This document shows, piece after piece, positions 4,426-64,000 of a DNA stretch of 64,000 bases (positions are counted from its first letter, which is position 1; the number at the start of each line of letters is the position of its first letter). The DNA is taken from sequence record MZ475898.1; one strand, written 5' to 3'. The notes beneath the pieces were generated by a model. It was not told the origin of the DNA. It saw nothing but the letters and a program-made list of their open reading frames with translations, and did not search any database. Both the position numbers and the translations under genes were made by a program.

Positions 4426-4761
4426 ATGAGCAATCAGCATCGCTACGTTGCATCTGCGCAGCGCCGCTTCTATTCGAAGAACTGGTTGGAGTTTTGTGAT
4501 CTTATTCGAGTAGAGCCGCAGAAGATTGGCGCTTTCAACAAACAGGGTGATTTGATTGGTCTCCAGTTGCCTGTTGATTTTGACTATACGACTGCAACAA
4601 AAAGCCTGCGCCTGATGTACGCTGTCAAGGAAGAAGGTGTCGATATGCGCTGCTACCTGTTTGGTGCTCGCTACTACAAGTTCGTTTTCTTTGAAAAAAC
4701 AATTGCCGTAAGCGAGGAAGAATATGAGATCGTTAGCCAACGTTCCAGCGCGAGTCAATGA
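4426..4761 (+). CDS. Hypothetical protein
   Basis: GGAG RBS; overlaps the next gene. Confidence 0.7.
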   Translation: MSNQHRYVASAQRRFYSKNWLEFCDLIRVEPQKIGAFNKQGDLIGLQLPVDFDYTTATKSLRLMYAVKEEGVDMRCYLFGARYYKFVFFEKTIAVSEEEYEIVSQRSSASQ

Positions 4762-5809
4762 CACACGGAAGCTGTCACGCATCGGTAAGATGATCGACGC
4801 TGCACTTGACGTTAAGATTCAAGAGAAGCGTTGGCCAAAGAAGCGTGTTAGTCCGTCAATGTTCCCTATCTGTCCGATTCAGGAAACTGCCAAGCTCATC
4901 TATCAGAAACACAACAACGCAATGACGGGTGAGTCTGGTACGCTGCTGAACATCTTTGCGAAAGCAGGTACGGGGATGCACGAGGCGATTCAGAATGCTC
5001 TGGGTCATAGTGGTCAGATGGTAGGCCACTGGAAGTGCACCAACGAAAAGTGTGAGGAGTACCCGAAGACTAAAGGCAAGATGGTCGATGGCAAATACAA
5101 GAAGGGCAAGTACACGCGCACTAAAAGCACGAACAACCGCTGCCCTTGTTGTGATCAGCCTATGGCCTATGCTGAACTCAAGGTGCTGTACAAAACTCTC
5201 AAGGGCTATGTCGATGGACTTGTCGATAACCTTGACGGCACGTACAGCCTGATCGATTTAAAGTCAACGATGATCACGAAAGCAGAGGACGGCACATTCT
5301 TTGTCAAGTACCATCGCTTCCAGATTGCAACCTATGCCTATCTGCTCAAGAAGCGCTATGGATATAACATCGTTGACTACACTCTGGTCTATGTTCCACG
5401 CGACAACCCTAAGAAGTTTGTCGAGAAGACCTTTGTGTTTGACGAAGAAGAAGCAAAACGCGCCAAAGACTTTATGATGGTGCAGATACGCGCTTGGGAT
5501 GCTGCGGTAAAATCGGCTGCTACTGGTGACCTGATGCCTGCTATCAAACGCAAGCCATGCAAGAGCGCCGAGTATTATTGGGATGAGTTTCATGGCTACG
5601 ACACTTGTCCGTTTGTAGATCATTGCTTTATTCAATCACACATGATCGACTTCATGAAGAAGTTAGAACAACGAATCATGGCTAACCCCGAACTGACGTA
5701 CACGGAAATCATTACGACAGGTCGGAAAACTCAACAACAAGGATTGCTGCCGGACAAGAAACCGAAGTCAGGTCGTCCGAAGCATATCGTAAAAACATTT
5801 GAGCTATGA
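4724..5809 (+). CDS. Cas4/RecB-like PD-(D/E)XK exonuclease
   Basis: SPSMFPIC, GTGMH, GYVDGL, LIDLKS, QIATY motifs and C-terminal Cys cluster; the start may be ATG 4790. Confidence 0.85.
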   Translation: MRSLANVPARVNDTRKLSRIGKMIDAALDVKIQEKRWPKKRVSPSMFPICPIQETAKLIYQKHNNAMTGESGTLLNIFAKAGTGMHEAIQNALGHSGQMVGHWKCTNEKCEEYPKTKGKMVDGKYKKGKYTRTKSTNNRCPCCDQPMAYAELKVLYKTLKGYVDGLVDNLDGTYSLIDLKSTMITKAEDGTFFVKYHRFQIATYAYLLKKRYGYNIVDYTLVYVPRDNPKKFVEKTFVFDEEEAKRAKDFMMVQIRAWDAAVKSAATGDLMPAIKRKPCKSAEYYWDEFHGYDTCPFVDHCFIQSHMIDFMKKLEQRIMANPELTYTEIITTGRKTQQQGLLPDKKPKSGRPKHIVKTFEL

Positions 5810-6216
5810 GCATCGAAAGAGACTATGAACGTTCTGCGCGAAGACTTAAGGAGTCTGTCCGGCGCATGGAACAACTCGGTTACGTTGTTCCCCACTGCGT
5901 TGTTTTAGTTCTGGCCAAGCTGCGGCCACCCAAAGAGGTGGTGTCGAGAAAGTACCTCGTTATTCTGATGTTGTTCAGTCAGACGTGTGAGACGCTGGGT
6001 GCTACCTTGACTATGCGTGAGCAGCTTGTGGTTAAACTGACTATCTTAGGCCGTAAGCATCCAACGCCAGAGATTACGCGCAAGCAACAGCGCATCGATC
6101 AGCTGGTAATATCGCAAGACAAGATCATTGAGAGTAACCTCGACCTGCTTGCGTATCGTTCGGAGATACTGCTGGCAATTCTCAGTGGTGAAGATCCAAA
6201 ATCACGATACATTTGA
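5806..6216 (+). CDS. Hypothetical protein
   Basis: ATGA start/stop overlap. Confidence 0.7.
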   Translation: MSIERDYERSARRLKESVRRMEQLGYVVPHCVVLVLAKLRPPKEVVSRKYLVILMLFSQTCETLGATLTMREQLVVKLTILGRKHPTPEITRKQQRIDQLVISQDKIIESNLDLLAYRSEILLAILSGEDPKSRYI

Positions 6217-13646: not shown

Positions 13647-13675
13647 GGGGTGGCTAGCGCCGCCCCTTTCTTTTC
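13647..13675 (+). terminator. Intrinsic terminator
   Basis: GGGGTGGC-TAGC-GCCGCCCC followed by TTTCTTTTC. Confidence 0.8.
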
Positions 13676-13697
13676 TCCACTCAGGAATTATCTCTCA

Positions 13698-16199
13698 ATG
13701 GCAAAAGAGAAGAAGGCCAAAGCAAGCAAGAAGGCGAAAGCTGTTGCTTCTGATGACATTGGCGGGACCGTAGTAGAACTGTTTAGTCTGGGTAGCTACA
13801 TGGACGACGTCCTCGATGCTATCGAAAAGAAGACGAAAGTTAGTTCTGCTGATGCTGCCCGACATGCTCCTCGTATCTCGACCGGTGTGCTTGCTCTCGA
13901 CATGTATCTGGATGGTGGTATCGTGCCTGGCGGCTGGTACACGTTCAGCGGCGGTGAGCAATCATGTAAGTCAACCATGACCATGAGTATCATGGCCTCT
14001 CTTATTCGTCTCAAGTACAGCGGCATTAGCGTTGTGTTTGACTACGAAGGTTCTACCGATGCCGACTACGTTGCTGGTCAGCTCAAAACATTCGGCGTTA
14101 AAGTCGATCCGAAAACTATCTTCGGTGTGCGTGATGAAGAAGGCGGCTGGATCATCAAGCCTACCATTCGCTACTACGCGCCTGACAACGGTGAGCGCTT
14201 CTTCGATTATATGTCGATGCTGCGTCGTCGCCTGCCTGACAAGATCGTTGAGAAAGACGGTTCAGCTTACTACCTCTTCGAGAACACCAAAGAGAACTCG
14301 AAGAAGCTGGCAGGCAAGTACGATAAGAAGTGGTTCAGTCGTAACAACCAGTTCAAAGTTCCTGCGCCAGATGGCCACATGCAGGCTGCTGTTATCGTTG
14401 ACTCCTATCCGGCAATGCTGCCTGATCAGGTCGATGACGACGACGGTTCAAAAGCAATGGCTCTGCAAGCGCGTATGTTCTCCGATGGCATCAAACGTTT
14501 CCGTGGCGGTATGCGCCGTAAGATGATGACTATCGTGGGCGTTAACCAGTTGCGCCAGAAGCCTGCTGTAATGTTCGGCAGCCCTGAATATGAGCCGGGC
14601 GGGGACGCTCTCAAGTTCTATTGCTTCGCTGATGACACGCGCATTCGTACCGACCACGGTGTGTTGACTGCGCCTAAGATTAAAGCGTTGCTGGACGAAG
14701 GCAAAGAAGTTTGCGTTGAATCGTTCGAAGGCTTCCAGAAGATTAACGGTGCGTGGAAAGTTGAAGACGCTCCTTATCCGATTGAAGTCAATGCTGGTGG
14801 GCATGTGTATATCGGCAGTGCTGAGCATCGCCAGTTCACCTTCATGCATGACACAACCGCAGAAGGTATGCGTGTACTTCGTCCTGAGTGGAACACGCTT
14901 AGCCAGCTGGCGCAGTACCCTTCTGCGGAAGGTCAGTATGCTGCGATTCGTCTTGCGTCTGTCGAAGAACTCAAGCAGAACACGCCTGATCAATTCGATG
15001 CATCAAGCAAGAACATCGAGCTGGTGTTGTCTAACTGCGGTCCTGAGAAGCGTGATATTAATATCCTCTCTCATGACGGTACAACGTACACGATGCCTGC
15101 TGTGCTGATCGATGCCGTTGGTCCTTACGATCACGTTGAAGACTTCGCGCATTACATTCAGGACTTCCTGAACATCGGTATCTATGCGTATGCAGACAAC
15201 TCCGGTATCTGGATTCCTGGTCTGGTCGAAGCTGACCTGCACAACGCTATTGCACGCGATGCAGACTCTGGTTATCAGGGTGTTGACTTCTACGCTACCT
15301 CACGTCAGATCAGCTACCAGATGATGGCAGTTATCTCTGACGTGTTCCCAGAGCTGACCCGCTTCGTTCTGGACTTCAACGCTAATCACGCGGAAGAGCA
15401 GGAAGAGCAAGTTTATCTGGCGCCTGGCTTTGACATAGCCGAAGCTATGGACGGCATTCTGCACAAAGAGATCAGCGGCTACGACGACCAGTACGATCTG
15501 CTGATGCAGCAACTGGCCTATGTCGAAGACTGGTTCAGTGTTGATGACCGTCTGCTGCCTGTACCGTTTACGCTACGTGCGCTTGACAAGCAAGTTGAGT
15601 TCTGGGATGTTAACGTCGATGAAACTTCCGTCGTTATTACCAACAACTTCGTTAGTCATAACAGTGACGTTCGCGTTCGTCTGGCTTCTCGTGCTGTGCC
15701 TGAAGGCTGGCCGAAACTTAAAGACGCGCCTGGCGTTGTCGGTGAGAAGTCTGTTTCTGTTGAAGGCGGTACTGACCGCTATCGCTTCATTGCAGCCAAG
15801 ACCATCAAGAACAAGATGGGCGGTATCCCGAACCAGCAGACGTGGTTACGCCTGTGGGAAGCTGACGGTAATGGTGAAGCACGCGGCTTTGACCCAGTGT
15901 TCGATACATGGCACTACGTCAAAACTCTCGGCCTCGTCAACGGCACGCGCAAGTCGTTCAAACTGAAAGCGCCATGCCCTGTAGCATCCGAAGTTAAGAT
16001 GGATTGGGATGACTTCCGTACGCTGATCAACGGTAACAAAGAACAGATTGTTAGCGTGTGCAAAAAGCTGAAAGTCAAACCTGTATCTCTGCGTCTGTGG
16101 GCGTTCAAGTTCGTGCAGTCTCAGAAAGGCAAAGATATGTTGAAAGCGTCGATCAGTAAGTCCGTTAAGAACGTTAACGACGACGAAGACGACGATTAA
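13698..16199 (+). CDS. recA: RecA/UvsX recombinase interrupted by an intein
   Basis: ISTGVLALDMYLDGGIVPG, Walker A variant GGEQSCKST, Walker B VIVDS, VNQLRQK, MFGSPEYEPGGDALKFY...SDVRVRL, KTIKNK; AGGA RBS at MAKEK. Confidence 0.92.
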   Translation: MAKEKKAKASKKAKAVASDDIGGTVVELFSLGSYMDDVLDAIEKKTKVSSADAARHAPRISTGVLALDMYLDGGIVPGGWYTFSGGEQSCKSTMTMSIMASLIRLKYSGISVVFDYEGSTDADYVAGQLKTFGVKVDPKTIFGVRDEEGGWIIKPTIRYYAPDNGERFFDYMSMLRRRLPDKIVEKDGSAYYLFENTKENSKKLAGKYDKKWFSRNNQFKVPAPDGHMQAAVIVDSYPAMLPDQVDDDDGSKAMALQARMFSDGIKRFRGGMRRKMMTIVGVNQLRQKPAVMFGSPEYEPGGDALKFYCFADDTRIRTDHGVLTAPKIKALLDEGKEVCVESFEGFQKINGAWKVEDAPYPIEVNAGGHVYIGSAEHRQFTFMHDTTAEGMRVLRPEWNTLSQLAQYPSAEGQYAAIRLASVEELKQNTPDQFDASSKNIELVLSNCGPEKRDINILSHDGTTYTMPAVLIDAVGPYDHVEDFAHYIQDFLNIGIYAYADNSGIWIPGLVEADLHNAIARDADSGYQGVDFYATSRQISYQMMAVISDVFPELTRFVLDFNANHAEEQEEQVYLAPGFDIAEAMDGILHKEISGYDDQYDLLMQQLAYVEDWFSVDDRLLPVPFTLRALDKQVEFWDVNVDETSVVITNNFVSHNSDVRVRLASRAVPEGWPKLKDAPGVVGEKSVSVEGGTDRYRFIAAKTIKNKMGGIPNQQTWLRLWEADGNGEARGFDPVFDTWHYVKTLGLVNGTRKSFKLKAPCPVASEVKMDWDDFRTLINGNKEQIVSVCKKLKVKPVSLRLWAFKFVQSQKGKDMLKASISKSVKNVNDDEDDD
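14622..15662 (+). mobile_element. Intein (347 aa) with a degenerate LAGLIDADG-like core
   Basis: Begins CFADDTRIRTDHG, block B SAEH, ends VSHN followed by +1 Ser; removing it restores ALKFY|SDVRVRL. Confidence 0.92.
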
Positions 16200-38801: not shown

Positions 38802-39782
38802 ATGCGTTTTGGTTTCGCCTGCAAACTGCTTGATGACAACGGTAAGCAACCGTACACGAACAAGAGCCTGAGCTATGCTCACTTCTCCAAGCTGTCTCAG
38901 ACAGAGCAGCAAGAAAAGCTGGTGCTCGTCGTCACACACAATCTGACCTCGTTGCTTGAGATGATCAGACACGTTGGCCGTCTGCGCACCGACTTGCGTA
39001 TGTTTCGAATCACAAGCGAACTACTTCCGCTGTTCACGCACCCGATGGTAACGCGTATGTATCTCCAAACACACATGACCAAACTGACCGACACGATGTT
39101 GGCGACATGTGGTGCAGCGGCTAGACGTCTTGGTGTTCGACTGTCATTCCACCCAGGTCAGTTTACCGTGCTTGCGTCTGACCGACCTGACGTTATGCTC
39201 AACTCGATTAACGAAATGGAGTATCACGCCTACTGTGCGCAGGCTATGGGCTACGGTCGTAAGTTCCAAGATTTCAAAATCAACATTCACCTGAGCGGTC
39301 GTCGTGGTTCCGCAGGTTTCAGAGACGCCTACTCTCGTCTAAGCGATCATTGCCGCAAGATGATCACGGTAGAAAACGATGAGTACACTTCCTCGATCGA
39401 GGATTGTCTTGAGCTTGCCGACATTTGTCCTATCGTTCTCGACATTCACCATCACTGGGTAATGACTAACGAATACATTCAGCCAACCGATGATCGTGTT
39501 CAACGTGTCATTGACTCGTGGCGCGGCGTTCGTCCTGTTGCGCATTACTCTGTGTCTCGCCCAGAGTTCATACCATCTACAGGTCTGCCTGATCAGAACA
39601 AGATAGAAGCAAAGTCTGCCTCGCTGCGTGCTCATTCTGACTACTACCACAACGACAGCGTAAACGAGTGGGCCCTCAGCTTCGAGCAATTCGACCTGAT
39701 GTGCGAGTCTAAAGCGAAGAATCTAGCACGCACGAAACTAGCCCTTTTTAAGGGCAACTCTGCACAAATATGGTCAAAATAA
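38802..39782 (+). CDS. uvsE: UV damage endonuclease (UvdE/UvsE)
   Basis: RFGFAC, FRITSELLP, RLSFHPGQF, INIH, VENDE, DIHHH, HYS, AHSDY, MCESKAK motifs. Confidence 0.92.
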   Translation: MRFGFACKLLDDNGKQPYTNKSLSYAHFSKLSQTEQQEKLVLVVTHNLTSLLEMIRHVGRLRTDLRMFRITSELLPLFTHPMVTRMYLQTHMTKLTDTMLATCGAAARRLGVRLSFHPGQFTVLASDRPDVMLNSINEMEYHAYCAQAMGYGRKFQDFKINIHLSGRRGSAGFRDAYSRLSDHCRKMITVENDEYTSSIEDCLELADICPIVLDIHHHWVMTNEYIQPTDDRVQRVIDSWRGVRPVAHYSVSRPEFIPSTGLPDQNKIEAKSASLRAHSDYYHNDSVNEWALSFEQFDLMCESKAKNLARTKLALFKGNSAQIWSK

Positions 39783-50539: not shown

Positions 50540-51925
50540 ATGATTTTCGATCTGCGCAAAAGTTTGGCCATGGTTCGTACCGTAATCGATGACCAAGTAA
50601 TCTATAACTTCTACAACATGATTGGCCGCGATATGCAATTGCCCGGTACTACTCTCAAAGAGATTATCGACGTGCAGCGTAAGGGCGAACTGTCCACCTG
50701 CATCATGTGGGGTACTCAGAAGATGGAGTATCGCACACTCAGATTCGATGAGCGTGGTGATCTCCTCTTAGACGTGACCGTTGGTCCGCATTGCTACGCA
50801 CGGCTTTCTTACGATCAGATTGAACACTATGGGCGCAAAGAGTTTAAGATTATTAACTGCATCGAGATTGATAGCTACCTAGCCCGTGACATTAGAGCGC
50901 ATCTCCGTGCAGTAGGTCAGACTGAGCCTAAGCTCGAATGGTATGACAACATATCGGATGATGAACTAAAGGACGCGCTCCTTTCTATCGGTTACATGGG
51001 ACCTCTGGCGTATGAAGGTAAATCTCGTAACCAGTTAGAGGATATGTTTGAGAAATTCCAGCGTAAGCACGATGCAGAATACAAATATACGCACGCGCAT
51101 ATTGGCATAGACCCAGACGAAAAGCTGCCTGCTGATCTGTACGAAGATGAGGCCCGCTCAATCACTCGTCGTTCGTTTGCTCCTCAGAAGACTGTCGATA
51201 TGATGATCACTGAGATCTCAAACGTGATGCGCATGTTCGATATCTGGGACTCAGCGCCGACCTCTGAGACGCATGAGTGGTCAATGCAAGAGGCGTACAT
51301 GGCCTTCTATAACAGCTTAGTGATTGATAGCGATGGCAGCCGTCTGCGTGAACTGAAAGATAATCCACAGTTCGCTATCAACTTCATCTACGGCATGGCG
51401 GCTGACCTGAACTGGATTCACATCAATGAAATGACCGAAGACTATCGTGGCTCGGTTGTGAATCGCATCCTGCAGGAGATTGCTGTTGAGATCAGCACCT
51501 CTGATGATTACTGCACGACGGAGCACGGCATTGCTCTTATTCAGAAAGAAATAGAAGAGGAAGAGGAGGATGCTTCTGAGCCTGTCTCCATCGAAAAGAA
51601 AAAGAAGAAAGGCTTCCCGGATATTCGTTCAGTAGAAGAGGTGAACTATGACACACTGCATATCATCGAGACTACATACGCGATGCCCAAGCAGCCTAAG
51701 CTGCGCACTAAGCTAGACGTACTGCAATCTCGTGAGTGCTATCTTGAGCACTTCTTCGGTTGTTTGAAAGAAAATGATTGGCATAGATTACACAATATCA
51801 CTAATCTTGACCTGCGTCGTATTGTCGGTGCTGTGACAAACTCTAATGGCGGTAGATTCAGTCACAACGCCCTGTTAAACATAATTAAACGTGCAGCTAA
51901 GAAACTGGCTGCTACTGAGTTCTAA
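50540..51925 (+). CDS. Hypothetical protein with a HeH-like module and acidic tract
   Basis: AGGAG RBS; DNISDDELKDALLSIGY...KSRNQLEDMF. Confidence 0.8.
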   Translation: MIFDLRKSLAMVRTVIDDQVIYNFYNMIGRDMQLPGTTLKEIIDVQRKGELSTCIMWGTQKMEYRTLRFDERGDLLLDVTVGPHCYARLSYDQIEHYGRKEFKIINCIEIDSYLARDIRAHLRAVGQTEPKLEWYDNISDDELKDALLSIGYMGPLAYEGKSRNQLEDMFEKFQRKHDAEYKYTHAHIGIDPDEKLPADLYEDEARSITRRSFAPQKTVDMMITEISNVMRMFDIWDSAPTSETHEWSMQEAYMAFYNSLVIDSDGSRLRELKDNPQFAINFIYGMAADLNWIHINEMTEDYRGSVVNRILQEIAVEISTSDDYCTTEHGIALIQKEIEEEEEDASEPVSIEKKKKKGFPDIRSVEEVNYDTLHIIETTYAMPKQPKLRTKLDVLQSRECYLEHFFGCLKENDWHRLHNITNLDLRRIVGAVTNSNGGRFSHNALLNIIKRAAKKLAATEF

Positions 51926-52689: not shown

Positions 52690-52693
52690 ATCT

Positions 52694-52736: not shown

Positions 52737-52790
52737 TAAAAGCGTAGCTTGTGCTGCGCTTTTTTACTTTCTGTCTGAGGAGACAACGAA

Positions 52791-53877: not shown

Positions 53878-53881
53878 ATCT

Positions 53882-53924
53882 GGACAAAATCGTGGTTGTA
53901 GCAAAAACCGTCCTATGTTATAAT
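53882..53924 (+). promoter_or_regulatory. Early-type promoter (GGACAAAA, 29 nt, TATAAT with TG extension)
   Basis: 11-copy motif. Confidence 0.82.
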
Positions 53925-53981: not shown

Positions 53982-54115
53982 GACTGTAAGGTAGCGGTAT
54001 CTTACAGTCCTTTTTCAAGTGGCTTCGAAGTTTGAGGCTTCTTGCGAAAGGTCAAATGTACCTTTGAGCGTTTTCGGATTTACGCGGTTTTCACCGACTG
54101 CGCTCTCACTTTAAA
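53982..54115 (+). ncRNA. Structured leader RNA, copy 1 (P1 plus P2 with multibranch insertion)
   Basis: GACTGTAAG/CTTACAGTC stem, then TTTTCAAGTG...CACTTTAAA enclosing three hairpins. Confidence 0.55.
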
Positions 54116-54133: not shown

Positions 54134-54955
54134 ATGCCAGAAGCACGCAAACCTCGCCCAGCTGATCGTTTCGCTAAAGCCCGTGCAGAGAAAAACTCAC
54201 CGGAGCGTCAAGATGCGGCAGCCCAGCGCACGTATAAAGACACTCCGCCTAAATCTGTTCAGGTGAAACTTGATGCTGTGGCAGCTTCTAAGAAGAAAGT
54301 TTCACGCGGCCCCAAGGCATCTCGTCCGCGTCAGTCGCCTGTTGTTGACGCAGCACCAAAGCCTCGCATTCGTGATGAGGAACGTGTGTACAATCTCGTA
54401 CACATGATTCTCTCTGCGTGGAAAGCCGATGCAGAAAACGCGGCGGTAAGTGTGGGAATCATTAAAGTGTCTCGCCGTAAGATCGAGGGTGCGTTACGCG
54501 ATCTCAAGAATACGCGCTTCACTAAAATCCCAGGCTTAATCAATGACGTGCTTGTCTACAATGAACTGGTAGCTGAGTTCGGACAGTGGGTGTACGTCGA
54601 GCACGACAGTCCTGATTGGATTTTTGTGCGCCTGCCTGAAAACAGCACGCCTGTGATTCGCGCTGACATTAGTTACGCCAAGACGGGTGAAACTTCCACG
54701 TCTGTTTCGACTTCTAGTGAAGTTCTGCTGAAAGATCTTAGCGAAGACGAAGAAGATGAGATCCCCGATAATGTCGAGTACGACGATGCGGACGAGACTG
54801 ACGAAGACGAAGCTGAGCCGTATGACTACAGCGCTTGGTCGCTGAGTGACCTGCAGGCTTATGCAAAGCGTTATGACTTCCTGCAGCCCGACACTGAGGG
54901 GTTCGATGATCGCGAGAAGTTGATAGCAGCCATCGAGCTGGGGGAACAGCACTAA
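54134..54955 (+). CDS. Dipolar protein: basic N-terminus, acidic C-terminus with a HeH-like module
   Basis: AAGGA RBS; DYSAWSLSDLQAYAKRY...DREKLIAAI. Confidence 0.8.
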   Translation: MPEARKPRPADRFAKARAEKNSPERQDAAAQRTYKDTPPKSVQVKLDAVAASKKKVSRGPKASRPRQSPVVDAAPKPRIRDEERVYNLVHMILSAWKADAENAAVSVGIIKVSRRKIEGALRDLKNTRFTKIPGLINDVLVYNELVAEFGQWVYVEHDSPDWIFVRLPENSTPVIRADISYAKTGETSTSVSTSSEVLLKDLSEDEEDEIPDNVEYDDADETDEDEAEPYDYSAWSLSDLQAYAKRYDFLQPDTEGFDDREKLIAAIELGEQH

Positions 54956-54965
54956 GCACAAATAT

Positions 54966-55009
54966 GGACAAAATAGTGGTAGTATCTAAAGCATGACCTG
55001 TGCTACACT
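54966..55009 (+). promoter_or_regulatory. Early-type promoter (GGACAAAA, 30 nt, TACACT with TG extension)
   Basis: 11-copy motif; no ORF before the next promoter. Confidence 0.75.
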
Positions 55010-55035
55010 ATAGATCGAATGCCTTGTAGTTTTTT

Positions 55036-55100
55036 GACTGTGAGTTACTTTCCGGCTCACAGTCCTTTTTAAAGTGCTCTCACAAGAACGCTTTAAAAAG
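55036..55100 (+). ncRNA. Structured RNA, copy 2 (P1 plus P2)
   Basis: GACTGTGAG/CTCACAGTC and CTTTTTAAAGTG/CGCTTTAAAAAG; compensatory change relative to copy 1. Confidence 0.55.
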
Positions 55101-55138
55101 CACAGACTGCCTGCGCTTTTGATAGACAGCATAAATCT

Positions 55139-55181
55139 GGACAAAATCATGGTTGTATCAGAATGCTGCCTGTCATACACT
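55139..55181 (+). promoter_or_regulatory. Early-type promoter (GGACAAAA, 29 nt, TACACT)
   Basis: 11-copy motif; CGAGCA/TGCTCG hairpin follows. Confidence 0.75.
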
Positions 55182-55242
55182 TTAATGAGTCGAGCAATAG
55201 TGCTCGCAACAAACTAAATCCCAATACTGAGGAGTATTACAC

Positions 55243-56850
<1,608 letters not shown>

Positions 56851-56925
56851 GTAACCTGTAGTTCTGAATACATGCGGCTCGAAAGGGCCGCACACTGACA
56901 ACAAAGTTGATTGAGGAATCACATT

Positions 56926-58188
56926 ATGTCAAACGCAAATAAAACTCTGCTTAACGCTCGTGTACGTCTGTCCACTGGCACAACTACTTTCATCAACAAG
57001 ATTAACGCGAACGGCTACGGCATCGATGCTAAGGGCCCACAGATTTCTGTGAAGCGTCTTGTTATTGCAGGCAAAATGCTCAAAGAGCTGGCTGAGCCGC
57101 TGCCGCAAGGTGAATACGTTGTGCTGAACGGCGTCACTGTGAAACTGAACAAGCGCCAGCAACGTGAGCTTGCAGAGAAAACGCTCGACACTAAAGCGCT
57201 GCTGCCTGATTTAAGCAAGCTGACCTACGTTGACCCGCAGACAGGCAAAGTCACTGATTCAAAAGTGAAGGCGCCTAAAGCTGGCGCGAAAGCAAGTCTG
57301 AAAGCAACGCGTGAGCACAACAAAGAGCCGAAGCGTAGTCGCAAACAGCACAAAGCTGAAACGAACGATCTCAAAGACAGTCTGGACATTATCGACGAAC
57401 GCAAATCACCGAAAGCGTCTCTGATTGAACGTCTGGATGCAGCAATCGCCGAAGCGAAAACGAAAGCACGCCGTAAGCTGTTAGCCGAAACGTTCGACAT
57501 GGACTGGGCTGATATTAAAAAGCATGGCGGTGCAGGTATCGTTAAGCAGCATGGCCGCAAGAACGCCCAGAAGTTTATTGATCGTCAGACAGTGCAGGTC
57601 GATAGCACAACGTTCATCAAACAAATGCCAGCGCCGCTCAAGCGTCTTATTCAGGACACTGAGTTGCGTCTCAATCAAAAGCAGATTGAGCAAGTGCTTG
57701 GTGCGCTGGGGCTTGATACGCAATTCTACGCAGTCGCCGTGCAAGAGCTGCTGGGCAAACTCAAACTGTCCATAGGCGGCCGCGTGATCGAAGGCGAAGT
57801 TGTTCGAAAGGAGAACACGCCGAAGCCAAAAAGGTTCGTACACGCTGAGGCGCAATACGCAGATAAGAAAGAAGCGAAACGCCGCGTAAGCAAAATGAAA
57901 TACGCGCTGCTGATTCCGCCTACGAAAGGTCTGCCTGCGTTACGCATTCATCAGGCAGAGGCAAAGCAGTCACTCGCCGTTATGCTGCACCTGAAGCCTG
58001 GGAACATCAAGCGTGGTCTGCTTGCGTATGACAACAAAGGCCGTGAGTATATGTATGTCGCTTGCGATATGACGGGCCCTGTGTTCATCGATAAAGATAG
58101 CAACGAGCTGGCGTTCACGTATGCCAATCTGATCGATAACTTCAAACTCAAAGCGCAGCCTGTGTCTGAACTGGACGTGGCCGTATGA
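56926..58188 (+). CDS. Basic protein paralogous in part to 55243..56850
   Basis: GAGGA RBS before MSNAN; shared N-terminal domain pattern. Confidence 0.8.
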   Translation: MSNANKTLLNARVRLSTGTTTFINKINANGYGIDAKGPQISVKRLVIAGKMLKELAEPLPQGEYVVLNGVTVKLNKRQQRELAEKTLDTKALLPDLSKLTYVDPQTGKVTDSKVKAPKAGAKASLKATREHNKEPKRSRKQHKAETNDLKDSLDIIDERKSPKASLIERLDAAIAEAKTKARRKLLAETFDMDWADIKKHGGAGIVKQHGRKNAQKFIDRQTVQVDSTTFIKQMPAPLKRLIQDTELRLNQKQIEQVLGALGLDTQFYAVAVQELLGKLKLSIGGRVIEGEVVRKENTPKPKRFVHAEAQYADKKEAKRRVSKMKYALLIPPTKGLPALRIHQAEAKQSLAVMLHLKPGNIKRGLLAYDNKGREYMYVACDMTGPVFIDKDSNELAFTYANLIDNFKLKAQPVSELDVAV

Positions 58189-58571
58189 GAACTGAAATCA
58201 TCGTAGCGGGAGTTCTCTCTCAACTTTACACGCGGCTGATTACGGCCGCTATAATGAAAGCGCATGTGTATTACTCAGACCTTGCGCCGGTGGTGTTCGG
58301 TGTGCAGCTTACCAAAGTCGGTAAGTCGCAGTATCAAGCGCTGTGGGATTTAGTAGCGCTGACGATGCAGATGGACCACGCACACGGCCGACCGCCTGTT
58401 GCTGCTCTGTATGTGTCTCGCGCTAATGCATCAAAACGACCGCCGCAAGCATTCTTCGCTGAATACGAGCGGCTAACTGGTAAGCGACTCAATGACGACG
58501 ACTGGGAAGAGTTAGTCGATGAAGTATGGGCAGCTTACTCTCCACCAGAAATCTGTCAGGAGCCGACATGA
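58185..58571 (+). CDS. Putative winged-helix protein
   Basis: VYYSDLA...D-x-x-HGRPPVAALYV...P-x-x-FF...W-x-x-LVDEVWAAY. Confidence 0.6.
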   Translation: MRTEIIVAGVLSQLYTRLITAAIMKAHVYYSDLAPVVFGVQLTKVGKSQYQALWDLVALTMQMDHAHGRPPVAALYVSRANASKRPPQAFFAEYERLTGKRLNDDDWEELVDEVWAAYSPPEICQEPT

Positions 58572-59026
58572 AGAAGTTGAAAGCCGTAAAGGTTAAAATT
58601 AGCCGCGGTGGTTATAAGCCTTCTTCTAAGGAAGAGGCAAAGAAGCTGGTGGCAGAGTTTCTGCTCGGTACCATCGGCATTAGCCCAACGCAAGTCAGTC
58701 AACAACTGCTGTTGAATATCACGAACTACAACTATCTGACCTCTGTTGCGTATTCTGGACGTTCTACAGATTACAGCCAAGCGGCAGCGCACAAAACTGT
58801 AAAAGAACTAAATGAATTTTGTCGAAAGCATAAAATTCAACTGGGCTTGCTAATTATGCCCCACACGTCGGCGTCTGAATATGATGGTGACGTAATTGTT
58901 GCAATCCCGTGGGAGCATGTTAAGAACAATCCGCAAATCCAGTCTGCCGTTAATTCTCTGTTTGAATCGGTTGAAGCAGACGGCTACCCACAGTATGTGA
59001 CTGATGCTAAAACAGTAGAGGGATAA
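58568..59026 (+). CDS. Hypothetical protein
   Basis: AGGAG RBS before MKKLK. Confidence 0.75.
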   Translation: MKKLKAVKVKISRGGYKPSSKEEAKKLVAEFLLGTIGISPTQVSQQLLLNITNYNYLTSVAYSGRSTDYSQAAAHKTVKELNEFCRKHKIQLGLLIMPHTSASEYDGDVIVAIPWEHVKNNPQIQSAVNSLFESVEADGYPQYVTDAKTVEG

Positions 59027-59027
59027 G

Positions 59028-60308
59028 ATGTTCTACGACTATGTATTCAACTTCGACGAGCGCCAGACGCTACTGTCGTTAGCGGAATCCAAGTATCTTC
59101 TTAAACGGGACATTCCCGAGTATCTTAAAAAGTCCAAACACGCAATTGAGATTCGTCACACTGTGACCAATCGTGGACGCGAGCGCCGCTCAGGAACAAT
59201 AACAACTCCTATCGTGCCGCGTATTCACACCCGTGATGTTATGCGCTTGCTTGATGATATTCGTGACAACGCGACTTACAGCTCCTGCCAAAGTCTCGCT
59301 GAACTGTTTGAATTGGGCTTGGGCGTTCCGCGCCAGAAAGATATTGCTACTTACCTTCATGCTTATTCGCGTGAGCACGACAAGAAAGGTATCGGTATCA
59401 AGTATATCCGCAAGCTGGTGGTTGATTATCATCGTAAGCACCGTCGTAGTATGGCGGGCAGTCGCTGGTTAATGCCTGCTGCTTACACGGCCAATCTGCT
59501 GAACATGCAGAACTTCATTCATCTGAAAGAAGACGGCTACAAGGGTAAAGTCAAAACGCCAGACGGCATCCCTGTAGTCTTGATTTACCAGAGCACTGAA
59601 TACGCGACTGGCGAGTTTACTTTGTGTGACGCATTCATGATTAGTCCGATGGGATATCCAATGCCGTTCGCACAGATTGCGCTGCGTCCCGAGTTCAAGG
59701 CTGTGCCTAAAACGTTTTGCTCCCAAGCTCTGCGCGGCAAAGGCATGTACTCAATGGTTCTCGGTATGATTTACTGGGAGAAAGGTGATTCAGTCGAATT
59801 GACCCGCGAAGTCATGGAGATTGATGATAACCAGTATCTCACGTTGCTTGATGATGAACGTTACGCTGACCGTCGCTCTGATGAATATTCAGCGATGCTG
59901 GTCAAGCGTGAAGAGTTCCGTCGTAATCGTGACAAGTGGCAGTCAGTGATTGATAAGTACGGCCAAACAGTTCGAACTCTCAAGCCTGAGATTAGCGCTC
60001 GTCTTGATCGTGCTCGTCAGTTCTTCTACGACCGTGCCGAGTTCCTGAAAGAGTTCGAGTCTCAGGAGAAGCGTGAGAACACCCGCGCATCAAAACGTTT
60101 TGCTGTAGCGTCTGCGATGTTTGCAGCGGTTGACTGTGGGACAATTGCTGATCGTCAGACCTACCTTGCAGTAAGCACAAAGATTGATAAAGTGCATGAC
60201 ATTCTCGGTAAGTGGGGATTCAACACTGTAAAATCTGTTAATGCTAGTTTGAAGAAGTCTCTTTTAACCTATGACGAATCAGGCGTATCTCGCGTCTGGT
60301 CACTATAA
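59028..60308 (+). CDS. Hypothetical protein
   Basis: Long ORF, coupled to the previous gene. Confidence 0.8.
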   Translation: MFYDYVFNFDERQTLLSLAESKYLLKRDIPEYLKKSKHAIEIRHTVTNRGRERRSGTITTPIVPRIHTRDVMRLLDDIRDNATYSSCQSLAELFELGLGVPRQKDIATYLHAYSREHDKKGIGIKYIRKLVVDYHRKHRRSMAGSRWLMPAAYTANLLNMQNFIHLKEDGYKGKVKTPDGIPVVLIYQSTEYATGEFTLCDAFMISPMGYPMPFAQIALRPEFKAVPKTFCSQALRGKGMYSMVLGMIYWEKGDSVELTREVMEIDDNQYLTLLDDERYADRRSDEYSAMLVKREEFRRNRDKWQSVIDKYGQTVRTLKPEISARLDRARQFFYDRAEFLKEFESQEKRENTRASKRFAVASAMFAAVDCGTIADRQTYLAVSTKIDKVHDILGKWGFNTVKSVNASLKKSLLTYDESGVSRVWSL

Positions 60309-60329
60309 CCCTTATCTGAGGAGATAAAC

Positions 60330-63300
60330 ATGTCCGAGAACAATCAAAGCGGAGCTACTCGCTTCGGCACAGAAGTGCAGGCCGGCATCGCAGAAGCGCA
60401 ACGCCGTGCTAACTCTGCTGAGAGTGGCAAGCTGAACAAATGCACGATCATCGTGCTGACTTCGATTGACGCCAACCAGCGTTACTCTTATCTGTCCGCA
60501 GACGAACAACTGCGCGAAGAACTGGTGCGTGGTAAAGTAATCAATCGTCTTCCTGATCTGTTAGAGCGTGCTGGTGGTAATACCGCTGCTGACAATAACA
60601 GCGCGTTCCACATCCTGCACCCGAACAACGGTGTGCCTACCTCGATCGATGCTCGCATCAAAGTGGGCGAAGGCAATGCGGTCATTCTGTCATATACTGT
60701 AAACAAAGCAGTGACAGAGATGCACGGTAGCTTATCGCTTGCTCTGTTTGCATCTGGCGCCGAAGACTTAAATGATCTGGCCGCTGATTTCGGTATTCAC
60801 GCAATTGCGATTGTTGAAGAATCGAAAGCCGCTGAGTTCATCAAAGGACTTGAAGCTCAGGTGGAAGCGTTGAATATTGTAAATCTCACTAGCATTGATG
60901 ATTCTAACGATTCGTTAGACCTGCCAGTGATTGACTTCGCTGCATTAGCGGGCAATCCTACAACAGTGCTTACGGGCGCTGTGCGTACCTTCATCATGCA
61001 ATCAATCAGCGGCGAAGTCTTCGCTGCAATCCCTAATAACGGAGAACTGAACGTGAAAAACGATAACGTGGCTCAGCCTGCTGACCTGGAAGAAGACTTC
61101 GACAACAATGATGAGATTGTTGATCAGAACGGCGGCGAAGGCGAAGTTACTGGCGAAGAGCTGCTGGGCTACAAAGCAGAAAATCTTTCGCTCGACCAAA
61201 TGCGTAGTGCGCTTGAAGCGATCAACTACGACCTGTCTGAAATGACGGAAGAAGCAATCCGTGAAGCGTTCGAAACTGAACAGAACCTTTACCTGGGTGG
61301 TGGCGATGATGAATCTTCCGAAGAAGAGGAAGATGAAGACGCCGCTGATGTTGACAGCGACGACGAAGAAGAGGAAGAAGACGAGGAGTTCGATGCTCCT
61401 GCGTATCTGGCTCAAGCGCTCGCTGCTGAAAACTTTAGCCGTAGCGATCTGAAACTGCTGGTCAAGTCGCAAGACCTGAAAGTGATGAAGAACGACACTC
61501 CTGAAACTCTGGTGCAGAAGCTGCTGGATCTGGTACAGGATGCATCGTCTGATGAAGTGTTCGAACTGATCACTGTGTTCGTTGAACTGCTGGACGAGCA
61601 CGGCGTTGAATGTGACGCGCTGCGTGCTACCATCGCTGAGGATGAAAGCGATGAAGACGAAGAAGAGGACGGCGAAGACGAAGACGCCGATGAAGATGGC
61701 GACGACGAAGAAGAGGAAGATGAAGAGGAGTCTGATGAAGACGAATCTGAAACCGAATCTGACGACGAACCAGCAACGCTGTTTTCTCCCTCTGACGTTA
61801 CTGATCCTCTCGACTACTTCCAGTTCGAAGGTGGTGACCTGACTCACGAACAACGCGCCGCTGCCGTACAGGCGATGGGCTCAAGCACCGCCGGTCTGAA
61901 CATCGTTCAGGTCATGAAAGCGTTCAATCAAATCCGTTCGCAGTCTAACGCGATTGACATTGCCGCTGATGAAGCAGACTCTGCGCTGTACGATGTGCTG
62001 ACTGCGCTGCCGTATGCAACGCTGCTGAGCTTCGCTCAAGAGATTGAGCTGGACGTTGATGGCGAAGAGTCTGCCGAAGATCTCGTCACTCTGCTGATGG
62101 ACGAATCTACTGCCGACAGCGATACGCTGAAAGCGTTGGCGTATGTGTTCGAAACCTACGGCGGCCTGGGTGTTGAAGCAGATGATATCCTGCTGATGGA
62201 CTGGCATGAAGCGCTGGCGCTGGTTATTCCTGTGTATGCATCGTCAGACGAAGTTGAGTCCGATGCAGAAGAAGACGAAGACGTTATCGCTGATGAAGAT
62301 TCGTCTAACGCTAACCTGAAGTTCCTGAAATCTGTTGACGTCAACAACCCTGTCGGCCCGATGCTCGAAGTTGATATGGACCGCACTCTGGTTATCAACT
62401 ACACCTTCACTGACGGTAACACTTACCGCGATGTGCAAGATGAGCTGGCTGATATCGGTGGCGTTAACTACCGCTTCCCGTTCAATCTGGGCAAAGCTGG
62501 TAAAGCAAACAAGAGCAGCGCGCCTGGTAGCCTGATTGCTCCTGCTGAACATCTGATCGCAATGTTAGACCGCGCCGGTACTACTCGCTTCTTAGCTGAC
62601 CCGAACACCTTCGATGTTGGTGTGTGGGCAGAATCTCTGGAGCGTATGCTGAACGCAGAAATCGCTAACAACCTGTACGCTGGTCGCATTGAAGACGGCG
62701 CTGACCCGCAGCAAGCTGGCATCGTAGTCGGTGACTTCATCGATGAAGACGAGCAAGCAGAAGTTGCTGACCTCGGCCTGCTGGATGAAGATGAGCTGGA
62801 AGCGTACACTGGTGATCATCTGCCGATTGCAAGCCTGTACAATGCGCAAGCCCGCGTCCGTCCAGTCAACGTCGATAGCTCTTACGTTGCACTGAGCACC
62901 GTAGTGCTGAACGTTGCAGTCCCTGGCTTCTGGTGTGACTCTGATGTTGGCCGTCTGGTGCAAGCGTGTGTTAATCGCGTAATCAGCCTGGCGGAAAGCG
63001 TTGAAGGCATCAAAGTGTATGCAGGCTTCACTCTGGAATCTGCTGCGCTGCTGAACAACGGTCGCCTGTACGAAGTTGTTGGTGCGCTGCGTGAGATGGA
63101 CGGTGTGCAGTCTTACTCTGCCGCTGACGCTGCTAACTTCTCAGAAGCGGAAGACATTATCGAAGTAGCGTCTTCTATCGATGATCGTGACCTGCCGTTC
63201 ACTGTACTGGCAAGCGGCCTGTCTGGCGCAACGTTTGAAAACGGCGGTGACCTGACCGTGCTGGTTCCGTGCTCTGTCTTCGACGAAGAGGAAGATGAGT

Positions 63301-63335
63301 CCGAAGAGGACGAGTCAGAAGAAGACGAAGAGTAA
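60330..63335 (+). CDS. Giant acidic protein (1001 aa) with D/E tracts and several HeH-like modules
   Basis: GAGGAG RBS; ENLSLDQMRSAL, ENFSRSDLKLLVK...DTPETLVQKLL, TALPYATLLSFAQEI...ESAEDLVTLL. Confidence 0.85.
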   Translation: MSENNQSGATRFGTEVQAGIAEAQRRANSAESGKLNKCTIIVLTSIDANQRYSYLSADEQLREELVRGKVINRLPDLLERAGGNTAADNNSAFHILHPNNGVPTSIDARIKVGEGNAVILSYTVNKAVTEMHGSLSLALFASGAEDLNDLAADFGIHAIAIVEESKAAEFIKGLEAQVEALNIVNLTSIDDSNDSLDLPVIDFAALAGNPTTVLTGAVRTFIMQSISGEVFAAIPNNGELNVKNDNVAQPADLEEDFDNNDEIVDQNGGEGEVTGEELLGYKAENLSLDQMRSALEAINYDLSEMTEEAIREAFETEQNLYLGGGDDESSEEEEDEDAADVDSDDEEEEEDEEFDAPAYLAQALAAENFSRSDLKLLVKSQDLKVMKNDTPETLVQKLLDLVQDASSDEVFELITVFVELLDEHGVECDALRATIAEDESDEDEEEDGEDEDADEDGDDEEEEDEEESDEDESETESDDEPATLFSPSDVTDPLDYFQFEGGDLTHEQRAAAVQAMGSSTAGLNIVQVMKAFNQIRSQSNAIDIAADEADSALYDVLTALPYATLLSFAQEIELDVDGEESAEDLVTLLMDESTADSDTLKALAYVFETYGGLGVEADDILLMDWHEALALVIPVYASSDEVESDAEEDEDVIADEDSSNANLKFLKSVDVNNPVGPMLEVDMDRTLVINYTFTDGNTYRDVQDELADIGGVNYRFPFNLGKAGKANKSSAPGSLIAPAEHLIAMLDRAGTTRFLADPNTFDVGVWAESLERMLNAEIANNLYAGRIEDGADPQQAGIVVGDFIDEDEQAEVADLGLLDEDELEAYTGDHLPIASLYNAQARVRPVNVDSSYVALSTVVLNVAVPGFWCDSDVGRLVQACVNRVISLAESVEGIKVYAGFTLESAALLNNGRLYEVVGALREMDGVQSYSAADAANFSEAEDIIEVASSIDDRDLPFTVLASGLSGATFENGGDLTVLVPCSVFDEEEDESEEDESEEDEE

Positions 63336-63386
63336 TTGACATGCGGTCCTTCGGGGCCGCAATCTTTCTCAACAGGAACTGTCTAA

Positions 63387-64000
63387 ATGTCAGAACAAGT
63401 TGACCACGCAACTAACATCATTAAGATGGTTAGTGACCGTGATGCTAAGATTAGCGAGCTGTCCGTTACGGCAAACGAGCTGCAAGGTCAGGTTAATGAC
63501 TATGCAGCCGAACTCGCCGCATCTGCTGTGCGTGAAACTGCATTGCGTTTGAAGCTACGTTCTCAAGAGCGCCAGACGAATACTGATTTAGTTCGTCTGG
63601 AAACTCGCACGAAAGAGCTGGTGGATATTTCAAACACTCAGATGGCCGAAAGCAACGAGCTTAAAGCACGCGTTGAAGAAATGAACGCTAAGCTGGCGCA
63701 AGTTGACCCGATGCCGTTCGTGCTGCATCTGGTTGCTGTGCAAGCCGCATCTGTGTTCTCGTACATGGTGCAGTCGTTTGCTCATGCTCATGTTAACCAG
63801 CGCACCAACGATACCACACGCACACTCAGTGCTCTGATGGTAGGCGAGACAGCGCGGCGCTATCAGTCTTTCGAAAAGACCATCGCTCGCTACTGCAACT
63901 CGATTGGCGCTGAACGTCCGAAAGCAAATGATGTGCGTAACGCTTTCCCTGACTTCATGCGTAATGAAGCTGATTTATTCTGTAAAGACCCGAAGTACAG
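63387..64000 (+). CDS. Coiled-coil protein, 3'-truncated by the window edge
   Basis: AGGA RBS; MSEQVDHATNIIKMVSDRDAKISEL...; frame open to the window end; absent from the track because it has no stop. Confidence 0.75.
   Translation, partial: MSEQVDHATNIIKMVSDRDAKISELSVTANELQGQVNDYAAELAASAVRETALRLKLRSQERQTNTDLVRLETRTKELVDISNTQMAESNELKARVEEMNAKLAQVDPMPFVLHLVAVQAASVFSYMVQSFAHAHVNQRTNDTTRTLSALMVGETARRYQSFEKTIARYCNSIGAERPKANDVRNAFPDFMRNEADLFCKDPKY

Follow-up and report, generated by a model that had tools for sequence, protein, structure and literature searches.

In what way a large phage might organize some 260 kb of replicating DNA in the absence of a chimallin shell is the question raised by a block of seven plus-strand genes, from 54134 to 63335, in the 64,000-nucleotide (nt) stretch of sequence record MZ475898.1 analyzed here (hereafter the window; genes and their products are named by the window position at which the gene starts). 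The window is 100% identical to the genome of Erwinia phage pEa_SNUABM_25, a jumbo phage of the fire-blight bacterium, E. amylovora, with a circular genome of 263,017 bp, in which window position 54134 falls at record position 240134 and all of the genes are annotated as "hypothetical protein." It is related to vB_EamM_Alexandra, Yoloswag, Y3, and the Dickeya phages AD1 and JA29, called the "Lupandier group" by Evseev et al. (PMC7412058). An earlier note, made from the sequence alone, had singled out the large, highly charged proteins of this block and a recurrent HeH/Rho-N-like module in them as candidate parts of a compartment or nucleoid system. Its description of the genes and their compositions holds (net charges in Table 1), and the ingredients that it listed are all present, namely, multivalent modules, polyanionic linkers, and a histone H1-like segment rich in Lys, Ala, and Pro (K/A/P), with the charge conserved. 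We found that a helix-extended-loop-helix (HeH) module of ~40 residues occurs in seven copies in four proteins within 12.8 kb. On the basis of these observations, we tentatively favor a reading in which the block encodes a coexpressed, oppositely charged set of proteins with SAP/HeH-type multivalent docking modules that works on phage DNA inside the cell, close to topoisomerase II.

The module occurs once internally in the product of 50540, a further carrier gene upstream of the block, once at the C terminus of each of 54134 and 55243, and four times in 60330 (M1 to M4; Table 1), where about three copies had been proposed. In a leave-one-out hidden Markov model (HMM) built from the single sequences of the seven originally claimed copies, the left-out copy scored at the level of shuffled sequences, except for the 55243 C terminus (9.2 bits, the highest shuffled score being 5.4). 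For profile-profile comparison with hhalign, 43 homologs of the 60330 protein and 36 of the 55243 protein were gathered, both sets were aligned, and related loci were added; 30 column shuffles per link served as the control. Six links emerged, near full length and in register, each scoring above 30 of 30 shuffles: M1 with M3, both in 60330 (probability of 95.5%, P = 1.5e-8); the 50540 module with the 55243 C terminus (93%, P = 2.8e-7), with M1 (85%, P = 6.1e-6), and with the 54134 C terminus (26 to 50%, P = 1.7e-4); the 54134 C terminus with M4 (62%, P = 7.8e-5); and M2 with M4 (35%, P = 4e-4). Native helical controls from 60330 (M2b and M4b) remained near the shuffled level, with no score above 12.4. 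Thus, single sequences of the module do not recognize one another above shuffles, but comparison of ortholog profiles joins all seven copies, and the recurrence proposed in the earlier note is supported for 50540, 54134, 55243, and 60330 but not for 25882, whose supposed copy scored at the shuffled level (-0.2 bits in the pooled HMM, 5.5 bits in the first one). The accompanying statement that the module nearly always lies beside Asp/Glu (D/E) tracts does not apply to the 50540 copy; the 60330 copies are spaced by poly-D/E linkers.

The pooled alignment displays a signature of the SAP/HeH type, comprising a hydrophobic position, S/T-x-x-E/Q-L-R/K, G-L, a loop, and D/E-x-x-E/Q-L-I/R-x-L. When run over the 263-kb genome, which was assembled from pieces of MZ475898.1 for the whole-genome census, the pooled HMM retrieved only its own seven copies, the next match (4.8 bits) falling below the shuffled maximum of 7.3; likewise, the ortholog HMM of each module recovered itself alone. 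With nothing further above the shuffles genome-wide, the seven detected copies are restricted to the 12.8-kb stretch. Pooled HMMs built with one protein left out were weak, the best score being 11.9 bits for 50540 (shuffled maximum, 8.4), with 7.3 bits for 55243 and no recognition of the 60330 and 54134 copies, which indicates that the modules are related remotely, at the level of a fold family, and without a recent repeat origin. Six-frame genome scans with the Pfam SAP, Rho_N, and HeH models were blank but are uninformative, since the prefilter missed even the 18-bit match of the 55243 C terminus.

As to the fold, Pfam places the 54134 C terminus nearest Ish1 (24.7 bits, E = 3.1e-5; cutoff, 26.6) and the excised 55243 C terminus nearest SAP (18.0 bits, E = 0.0022; gathering threshold, 23.9), and LEM matches to the excised modules reached 13.4 (55243 C terminus) and 11.4 bits against a cutoff of 24. 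The excised 60330 modules matched none of Ish1, SAP, or LEM, full-length scans of 27 and 31 orthologs gave no SAP match, neither the HeH model (PF12949) nor Rho_N (PF07498) had an hmmscan match on any module, and the pooled module profile compared with Rho gave an E value of 0.19 only. Membership in any curated family is not supported by these scans. AlphaFold2 models of the 60330 and 55243 proteins, obtained with the ortholog alignments, were compared by VIA-align with 48,161 PDB chains. The 55243 C terminus (residues 490 to 535, predicted local distance difference test [pLDDT] score of ~92), a unit of three helices in the model, superposes on the SLX4 SAP domain (7bu5; Z = 3.9, root mean square deviation [rmsd] of 1.9 Å over 40 residues), on Rho residues 2 to 40 (1a62; Z = 4.0, 2.4 Å, 39 residues), and on the Hcc-1 SAP domain (2do1; Z = 4.0, 3.7 Å, 42 residues). 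M3 matches the last of these (Z = 5.1, 4.0 Å, 55 residues) and Rho-N (1a62; Z = 4.7, 2.7 Å, 46 residues), and M4 matches FAN1 residues 460 to 533 (Z = 6.1 to 6.4, 3.3 to 4.1 Å, 63 to 70 residues), which we take to lie within the FAN1 SAP region, and the PIAS1 SAP domain (1v66; Z = 4.9, 3.6 Å, 64 residues). The Z values of the SAP superpositions are modest, yet the whole unit is covered. The HeH/SAP/Rho-N fold class put forward in the earlier note is thereby supported by the models of these three modules. Two other assignments were rejected: a death-fold bundle for M2 (Z = 5 to 6.5), as such matches are unreliable for a small helical bundle, and an EF-hand for M4, whose loop misfits the calcium-binding pattern and is without conservation in orthologs.

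The 60330 protein is the most elaborate carrier. Its model (mean pLDDT of 76) has an α/β N-terminal domain (residues 35 to 235), a C-terminal α/β region (residues 661 to 984), and an acidic tail, with the four helical modules linking the two end domains, spaced by disordered acidic linkers. Across orthologs, the module lengths are stable (M1, 45 ± 5; M2, 86 ± 2; M3, 56 ± 1 residues), and at an identity of 0.39 to 0.48 the modules are about as conserved as the folded end domains. The linkers range in length from 3 to 6 up to 38 to 77 residues and consist of 65 to 80% D/E with almost no Lys or Arg (K/R); two intrinsically disordered regions have a lower D/E content (IDR1, 33%; IDR4, 49%). The mean module charge over orthologs is -8.4 for M1, -9.4 for M4, +0.4 for M2, -1.0 for M3, and -2.7 for the 55243 C terminus. 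M1 and M4 have only 0.3 to 1.6 K+R and do not show the SAP pattern of a Gly-Leu pair closing helix 1 with basic residues in the loop; the 55243 module averages 6.6 K+R with a conserved loop Arg-Lys. The strong acidity of M1 and M4 and their near lack of Lys/Arg make nucleic acid tethering unlikely for two of the four modules. With respect to the end domains (window positions 60330 to 60935 and 62310 to 63281), no convincing fold match was obtained, the best being TiaS (Z = 5.0) and BFVD matches to uncharacterized proteins, one of them from phage PaBG (E = 1.3e-4). A Foldseek search of the PDB with the whole 1,001-amino-acid (aa) model returned nothing at E < 0.001, and a BFVD search with it returned one ortholog and otherwise weak matches to uncharacterized phage proteins. 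In tblastn searches, the family was seen only in Erwinia, Dickeya, and Yersinia jumbo phages.

The 55243 protein, modeled at a mean pLDDT of 67, combines blocks of both charges (Table 1). Its H1-like segment (pLDDT of <50; K+R of 0.36 and A+P of 0.31) is 46 ± 6 residues long in 27 orthologs, among which its composition is constant and its length and sequence vary. The flanking domains resemble small β barrels of the KOW or Tudor/CarD type, with Z values of 4 to 5 only. An invariant acidic-aromatic motif, DDDFxFDD (residues 486 to 493), ends the acidic linker directly before the SAP-like module. In the loop of this module, Gly514 and Leu515 show no variation, and conservation is at least 90% for Arg519 and Lys520. 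The N-terminal β domain recurs in the polycationic 56911 protein (window positions 55243 to 55473 and 56926 to 57105; BLASTP E = 1e-4, 27% identity over 60 residues). There are weak structure and sequence hints that this shared domain is a KOW/uL24-type barrel, and in both proteins a Lys-rich stretch comes next after it. Profile and sequence searches against the sequences of solved structures gave nothing beyond low-complexity acidic matches and a faint hint of uL24; the ESM Atlas had nothing usable for 54134, and its leads for 59028 were all below noise. In scans against Pfam, PHROGs, and NCBIfam, no function was found for the proteins of the block; the PHROGs matches are exclusively to families of "unknown function," such as phrog_32501 for 56911, and 58185 had no family match in the Pfam and NCBIfam scans. 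When the open reading frames (ORFs) of the genome that reach 150 aa or more are ranked by acidity per residue, the products of 60330 and 55243 come second and third. Elsewhere in the genome, outside the window, the most acidic large protein (record positions 108599 to 110689, minus strand; net charge of about -147 when taken from a 701-aa ORF call, the annotated product having 696 aa) matches phrog_20988, which carries an ATPase annotation. The most basic protein of the genome (record positions 161434 to 162093, minus strand; 219 aa, net charge of +63, or 0.29 per residue) matches phrog_37424, of unknown function, and two further strongly basic proteins are encoded at record positions 166029 to 168120; these basic proteins are possible DNA-condensing candidates and conceivable partners of the polyanions.

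Comparison with related loci reveals that the cassette is retained as a unit. Yoloswag and a 257-kb metagenomic phage keep the order of 55243-, 56911-, 58185-, 58526-, 59028-, and 60330-like genes, and in both, genes for GyrB-like and ParC/GyrA-like subunits (topoisomerase II) lie 4 to 7 kb downstream. The order also holds in very distant contigs, with the GyrB-like and ParC-like genes downstream wherever the contig extends that far, and a 14-kb contig has a reduced form of the cassette. Orthologs of 58185 are present in every relative, including loci L007, L013, and L014. For the rare 59028 family, an exhaustive profile search among 1.84 billion proteins recovered only 26 representatives; ten distant members contain no Pfam domain, and the most distant ones have the same neighbor genes. 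Despite sequence divergence, the net charge is constant in the 60330 family (-184 ± 14 in 31 orthologs, down to 26% identity), in the 55243 family (-69 ± 8), and in the 56911 family (+28 to +35 in five orthologs of 334 to 475 aa), a pattern that points to net charges being fixed by selection. The module itself shifts between carriers across relatives. A distant metagenomic homolog of 55243 (gene 1 of contig L013) has the β domain, K/P repeats, and acidic tracts and a single module that is internal. In pEa_SNUABM_1 (locus L003, positions 4833 to 5920) and pEa_SNUABM_17 (locus L004, positions 4739 to 5907), the equivalent of 54134 is two adjacent ORFs, the second of which (149 aa) joins a different N-terminal part to the same C-terminal 54134-type module, a case of module shuffling. 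The cassette shares its strand arm with the genes for a single-stranded DNA-binding protein (SSB), a UvsX-like recombinase, and a primase. The UvsX/RecA-like recombinase (window positions 13650 to 16199, plus strand) is, at 849 aa, about twice the usual length and matches RecA in two stretches, suggesting a large insertion or an intein.

The earlier note further ascribed expression of the block to strong promoters of an early type, acting through structured leaders. A conserved box, TGGACAAAAT, followed ~28 nt on by a TAYAMT hexamer, occurs in seven plus-strand intergenic copies between window positions 39771 and 55138 (Table 1). After the promoter-like elements at 52693, 53881, and 54965, a hairpin with a T-run follows within ~45 to 100 nt and before the next gene (52738 to 52763, 53982 to 54009, and 55036 to 55064, respectively), and the latter two hairpins have common GACTGT...ACAGTC stems. 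Hence, the box, the sigma-70-type -10 hexamer, and the leader hairpin with its T-run are all there, and promoters of the early type with structured leaders are plausible. The -35 region of the family is poorly conserved. The upstream box may be a UP-like element or an activator site, and the leader hairpins could be short RNAs or attenuators. The six genes from 55138 onward have overlapping or abutting stop and start codons, with a promoter box and a terminator at the two ends, and genes 55243 to 63335, upstream of the topoisomerase II genes, look like one operon. The elements fit transcription by host sigma-70 polymerase, which may be early in infection. Past the terminator, the product of a gene that continues outside the window (positions 63387 to 63998) has the look of a coiled coil, and its SMC-type match is faint (TIGR02168, E = 0.004), falling well short of the cutoff.

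Table 1. Features of the locus in window coordinates, with residue ranges in the encoded proteins
Feature	Window position (nt)	Strand	Residues	Description
Promoter-like elements	39771, 43188, 48656, 52693, 53881, 54965, 55138	+		Seven elements; box close to CAYAAATNTGGACAAAAT
Gene 50540	50540-51925	+		461 aa; one internal module
50540 module	50930-51067	+	131-176	SAP/HeH-like; profile of three orthologs
Promoter-like element	53881-53924	+		Box TGGACAAAAT, 28 nt, TATAAT; at head of block
Leader hairpin	53982-54009	+		12 pairs, then T-run; terminator-like, in 54134 leader
Gene 54134	54134-54955	+		273 aa; net charge -13
54134 basic tail		+	1-80	N-terminal; net charge +14; followed by folded middle
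54134 acidic linker		+	196-230	Net charge -18
54134 module	54818-54952	+	229-273	C-terminal, SAP/HeH-like
Promoter-like box and hairpin	54965-55064	+		Second box (54965), then hairpin with T-run (55036-55064), twin of 53982-54009
Promoter-like element	55138-55194	+		Third box; -10 hexamer TACACT; heads six-gene unit
Gene 55243	55243-56850	+		535 aa; net charge -69; alignment of 27 orthologs, AlphaFold model
55243 N-terminal domain		+	1-77	Small β domain
55243 H1-like segment		+	78-132	K/A/P rich, disordered
55243 middle part		+	133-316	α/β plus Tudor-like part
55243 poly-Glu		+	317-367	
55243 second β domain		+	368-462	Small; followed by acidic linker
55243 module	56722-56847	+	494-535	C-terminal, SAP-like
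Gene 56911	56911-58188	+		About 420-425 aa; basic, isoelectric point (pI) 9.9; net charge +30
Gene 58185	58185-58571	+		128 aa; net charge -3; conserved; start overlaps stop codon of 56911
Gene 58568	58568-59026	+		152 aa; conserved; charge of +3 computed for 166-aa reading starting at 58526
Gene 59028	59028-60308	+		426 aa; basic; net charge +14; possible helix-turn-helix around residues 88-110
Gene 60330	60330-63335	+		1,001 aa; net charge -183; pI 4.05
M1	61164-61286	+	279-319	60330 module
M2	61416-61541	+	363-404	60330 module
M3	61818-61940	+	497-537	60330 module
M4	61998-62108	+	557-593	60330 module
Terminator-like hairpin	63342-63361	+		8 pairs (6 G-C), T-rich tail; 7 nt past 60330 stop codon

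Taken together, the conserved operon 55243 to 63335 of the Alexandra/Yoloswag-type jumbo phages, with 54134 and 50540 just upstream, would supply two polyanions, one polycation, and one mildly basic protein. The modules can be pictured as small docking units carried on flexible polyanionic spacers: copies with a conserved loop Arg/Lys or a near-neutral charge (the 55243 C terminus, M2, and M3) could touch nucleic acid, and for the strongly acidic M1 and M4, basic proteins are the likelier partners. Polycationic members of the set are the 56911 protein, the K/A/P segment within 55243, and the basic tail at the N terminus of 54134. The outcome might be an assembly, multivalent and driven by charge, that forms on or around the phage DNA inside the cell during replication, alongside topoisomerase II and the replication genes. 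A more far-reaching version, which we consider a long shot, is that chimallin-less jumbo phages keep their replicating DNA in a membrane-less, charge-balanced "chromatin" or coacervate coupled to the phage topoisomerase II; it might be built from the H1-like polycation, the basic partner, and the two polyanions, with the SAP-like modules giving the multivalent contacts.

Several observations weigh against the docking-module reading. None of the curated SAP, HeH, and Rho_N thresholds is reached, and the pooled module profile found nothing significant among the sequences of solved structures, its best matches being EF-hand linkers (E = 0.01). The 54134 and 50540 modules lie outside the two AlphaFold2 models, the fold evidence coming from 55243 and 60330, and Z values of 4 to 6.5 for small helical units may reflect a common arrangement of helices. 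Moreover, the acidity of M1 and M4 is too high for binding to DNA, and a search for RNA sequencing runs of the phage located only DNA or metagenome runs. The missed thresholds, the EF-hand matches, and the ease with which helical units attain middling Z scores, together with the failure of the single-sequence statistics, are also what would speak for the module being a common helical hairpin without a shared role, carried by functionally unrelated cassette proteins. We regard this as quite unlikely, since the profile links are full length, in register, and above all column shuffles, with M2b and M4b near the shuffled level, all seven copies fall inside 12.8 kb of a 263-kb genome, and relatives keep the module even though its carriers differ.

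The charge itself admits other explanations. The 60330 and 55243 proteins could be host takeover decoys, whose Lys/Arg-free D/E tracts mimic DNA and whose targets are nucleoid-associated or DNA-targeting defense proteins of the host, with the SAP-like modules providing the specific contacts. Their extreme and conserved negative charge, the linkers that vary in length at a constant composition, the sigma-70-type elements suggestive of early transcription by the host polymerase, and the lack of any enzymatic domain in the Pfam, PHROGs, and NCBIfam scans would all suit such a role; however, that they are tightly co-conserved with basic partners of the same operon, and apparently coupled to them in translation, points rather to an internal phage complex, and the folded end domains of 60330 (~200 and ~320 residues) would be left unaccounted for, so that we consider decoys unlikely. 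Alternatively, the proteins might be associated with the virion, as internal head or ejected proteins or as scaffolds that leave the capsid. High charge is typical of scaffolds and internal proteins, many packed proteins of jumbo phages have no assigned function, and virion proteomics in this group is limited to 14 abundant proteins of PaBG (PMC7412058). Nevertheless, the genes lie among replication genes with sigma-70-type elements, outside the runs of tail and head genes, an argument from the strand arm that is weakened because the minus arm also carries the DNA polymerase, and a polyanion of -183 is hardly expected alongside packed DNA; a virion role thus seems very unlikely to us.

The cassette offers a concrete, conserved, and bench-testable candidate for DNA organization in large phages that do without the chimallin shell, made up of six genes predicted to be cotranscribed, with net charges that are fixed and opposite and a small docking module in seven copies. 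It is also a case of SAP/HeH-type modules reused within one phage locus, the acidic versions probably binding protein and not DNA. Should a decoy or virion role prove true, the locus still defines several families of unannotated proteins.

Of the known systems, the chimallin/PhuZ phage nucleus of the Chimalliviridae offers the parallel of a jumbo phage that might organize its replicating DNA. It differs in that the cassette proteins bear no resemblance to a shell protein and a PhuZ-type tubulin (PF00091) has no match anywhere in the 263,017-bp record, the controls being positive in 13 of 14 genomes, which extends to the whole genome the absence noted earlier for the window. For chimallin, with no direct search of the genome made, absence is taken from the literature on Alexandra only, which served Prichard et al. 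for comparison and fell outside their set of phages encoding chimallin (bioRxiv 10.1101/2023.02.24.529968).

A second parallel is with histone H1 and the DNA-condensing Lys/Ala/Pro-rich tails of bacterial proteins, which the 55243 segment resembles in its constant composition and in being encoded together with polyanions. Tails of the H1 type have acidic chaperone partners, as exemplified by nucleoplasmin and by prothymosin-α with H1. Unlike H1, 55243 has its polycation and polyanion blocks in one chain, and neither a linker histone globular (winged-helix) domain nor a histone fold was matched in it by Pfam at E values of up to 1.

With the Rho N-terminal region and the HeH-LEM-Ish1 class (PF07498, PF12949, PF03020, and PF10281), the modules share the helix-extended-helix topology, the superposition of the 55243 C terminus and M3 on helices within Rho residues 1 to 48, the Ish1 match of the 54134 C terminus, and a weak LEM match. 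They differ from it in lacking a Rho_N or HeH hmmscan match and a following Rho OB-fold or ATPase. Finally, compared with the SAP domain (PF02037) of PIAS1, Ku70, SAF-A, Hcc-1, SLX4, and FAN1, the phage modules score below the Pfam cutoff, several copies are strongly acidic and devoid of the basic residues that contact DNA, and the polyanionic carriers are without partner domains of the eukaryotic type. What they have in common with it is a ~35-residue helix-extended-loop-helix with the L-x-x-L...G-L...L-I/R-x-L pattern, superposition on the SLX4, Hcc-1, PIAS1, and FAN1 units, and deployment as a small terminal or repeated module on larger proteins.

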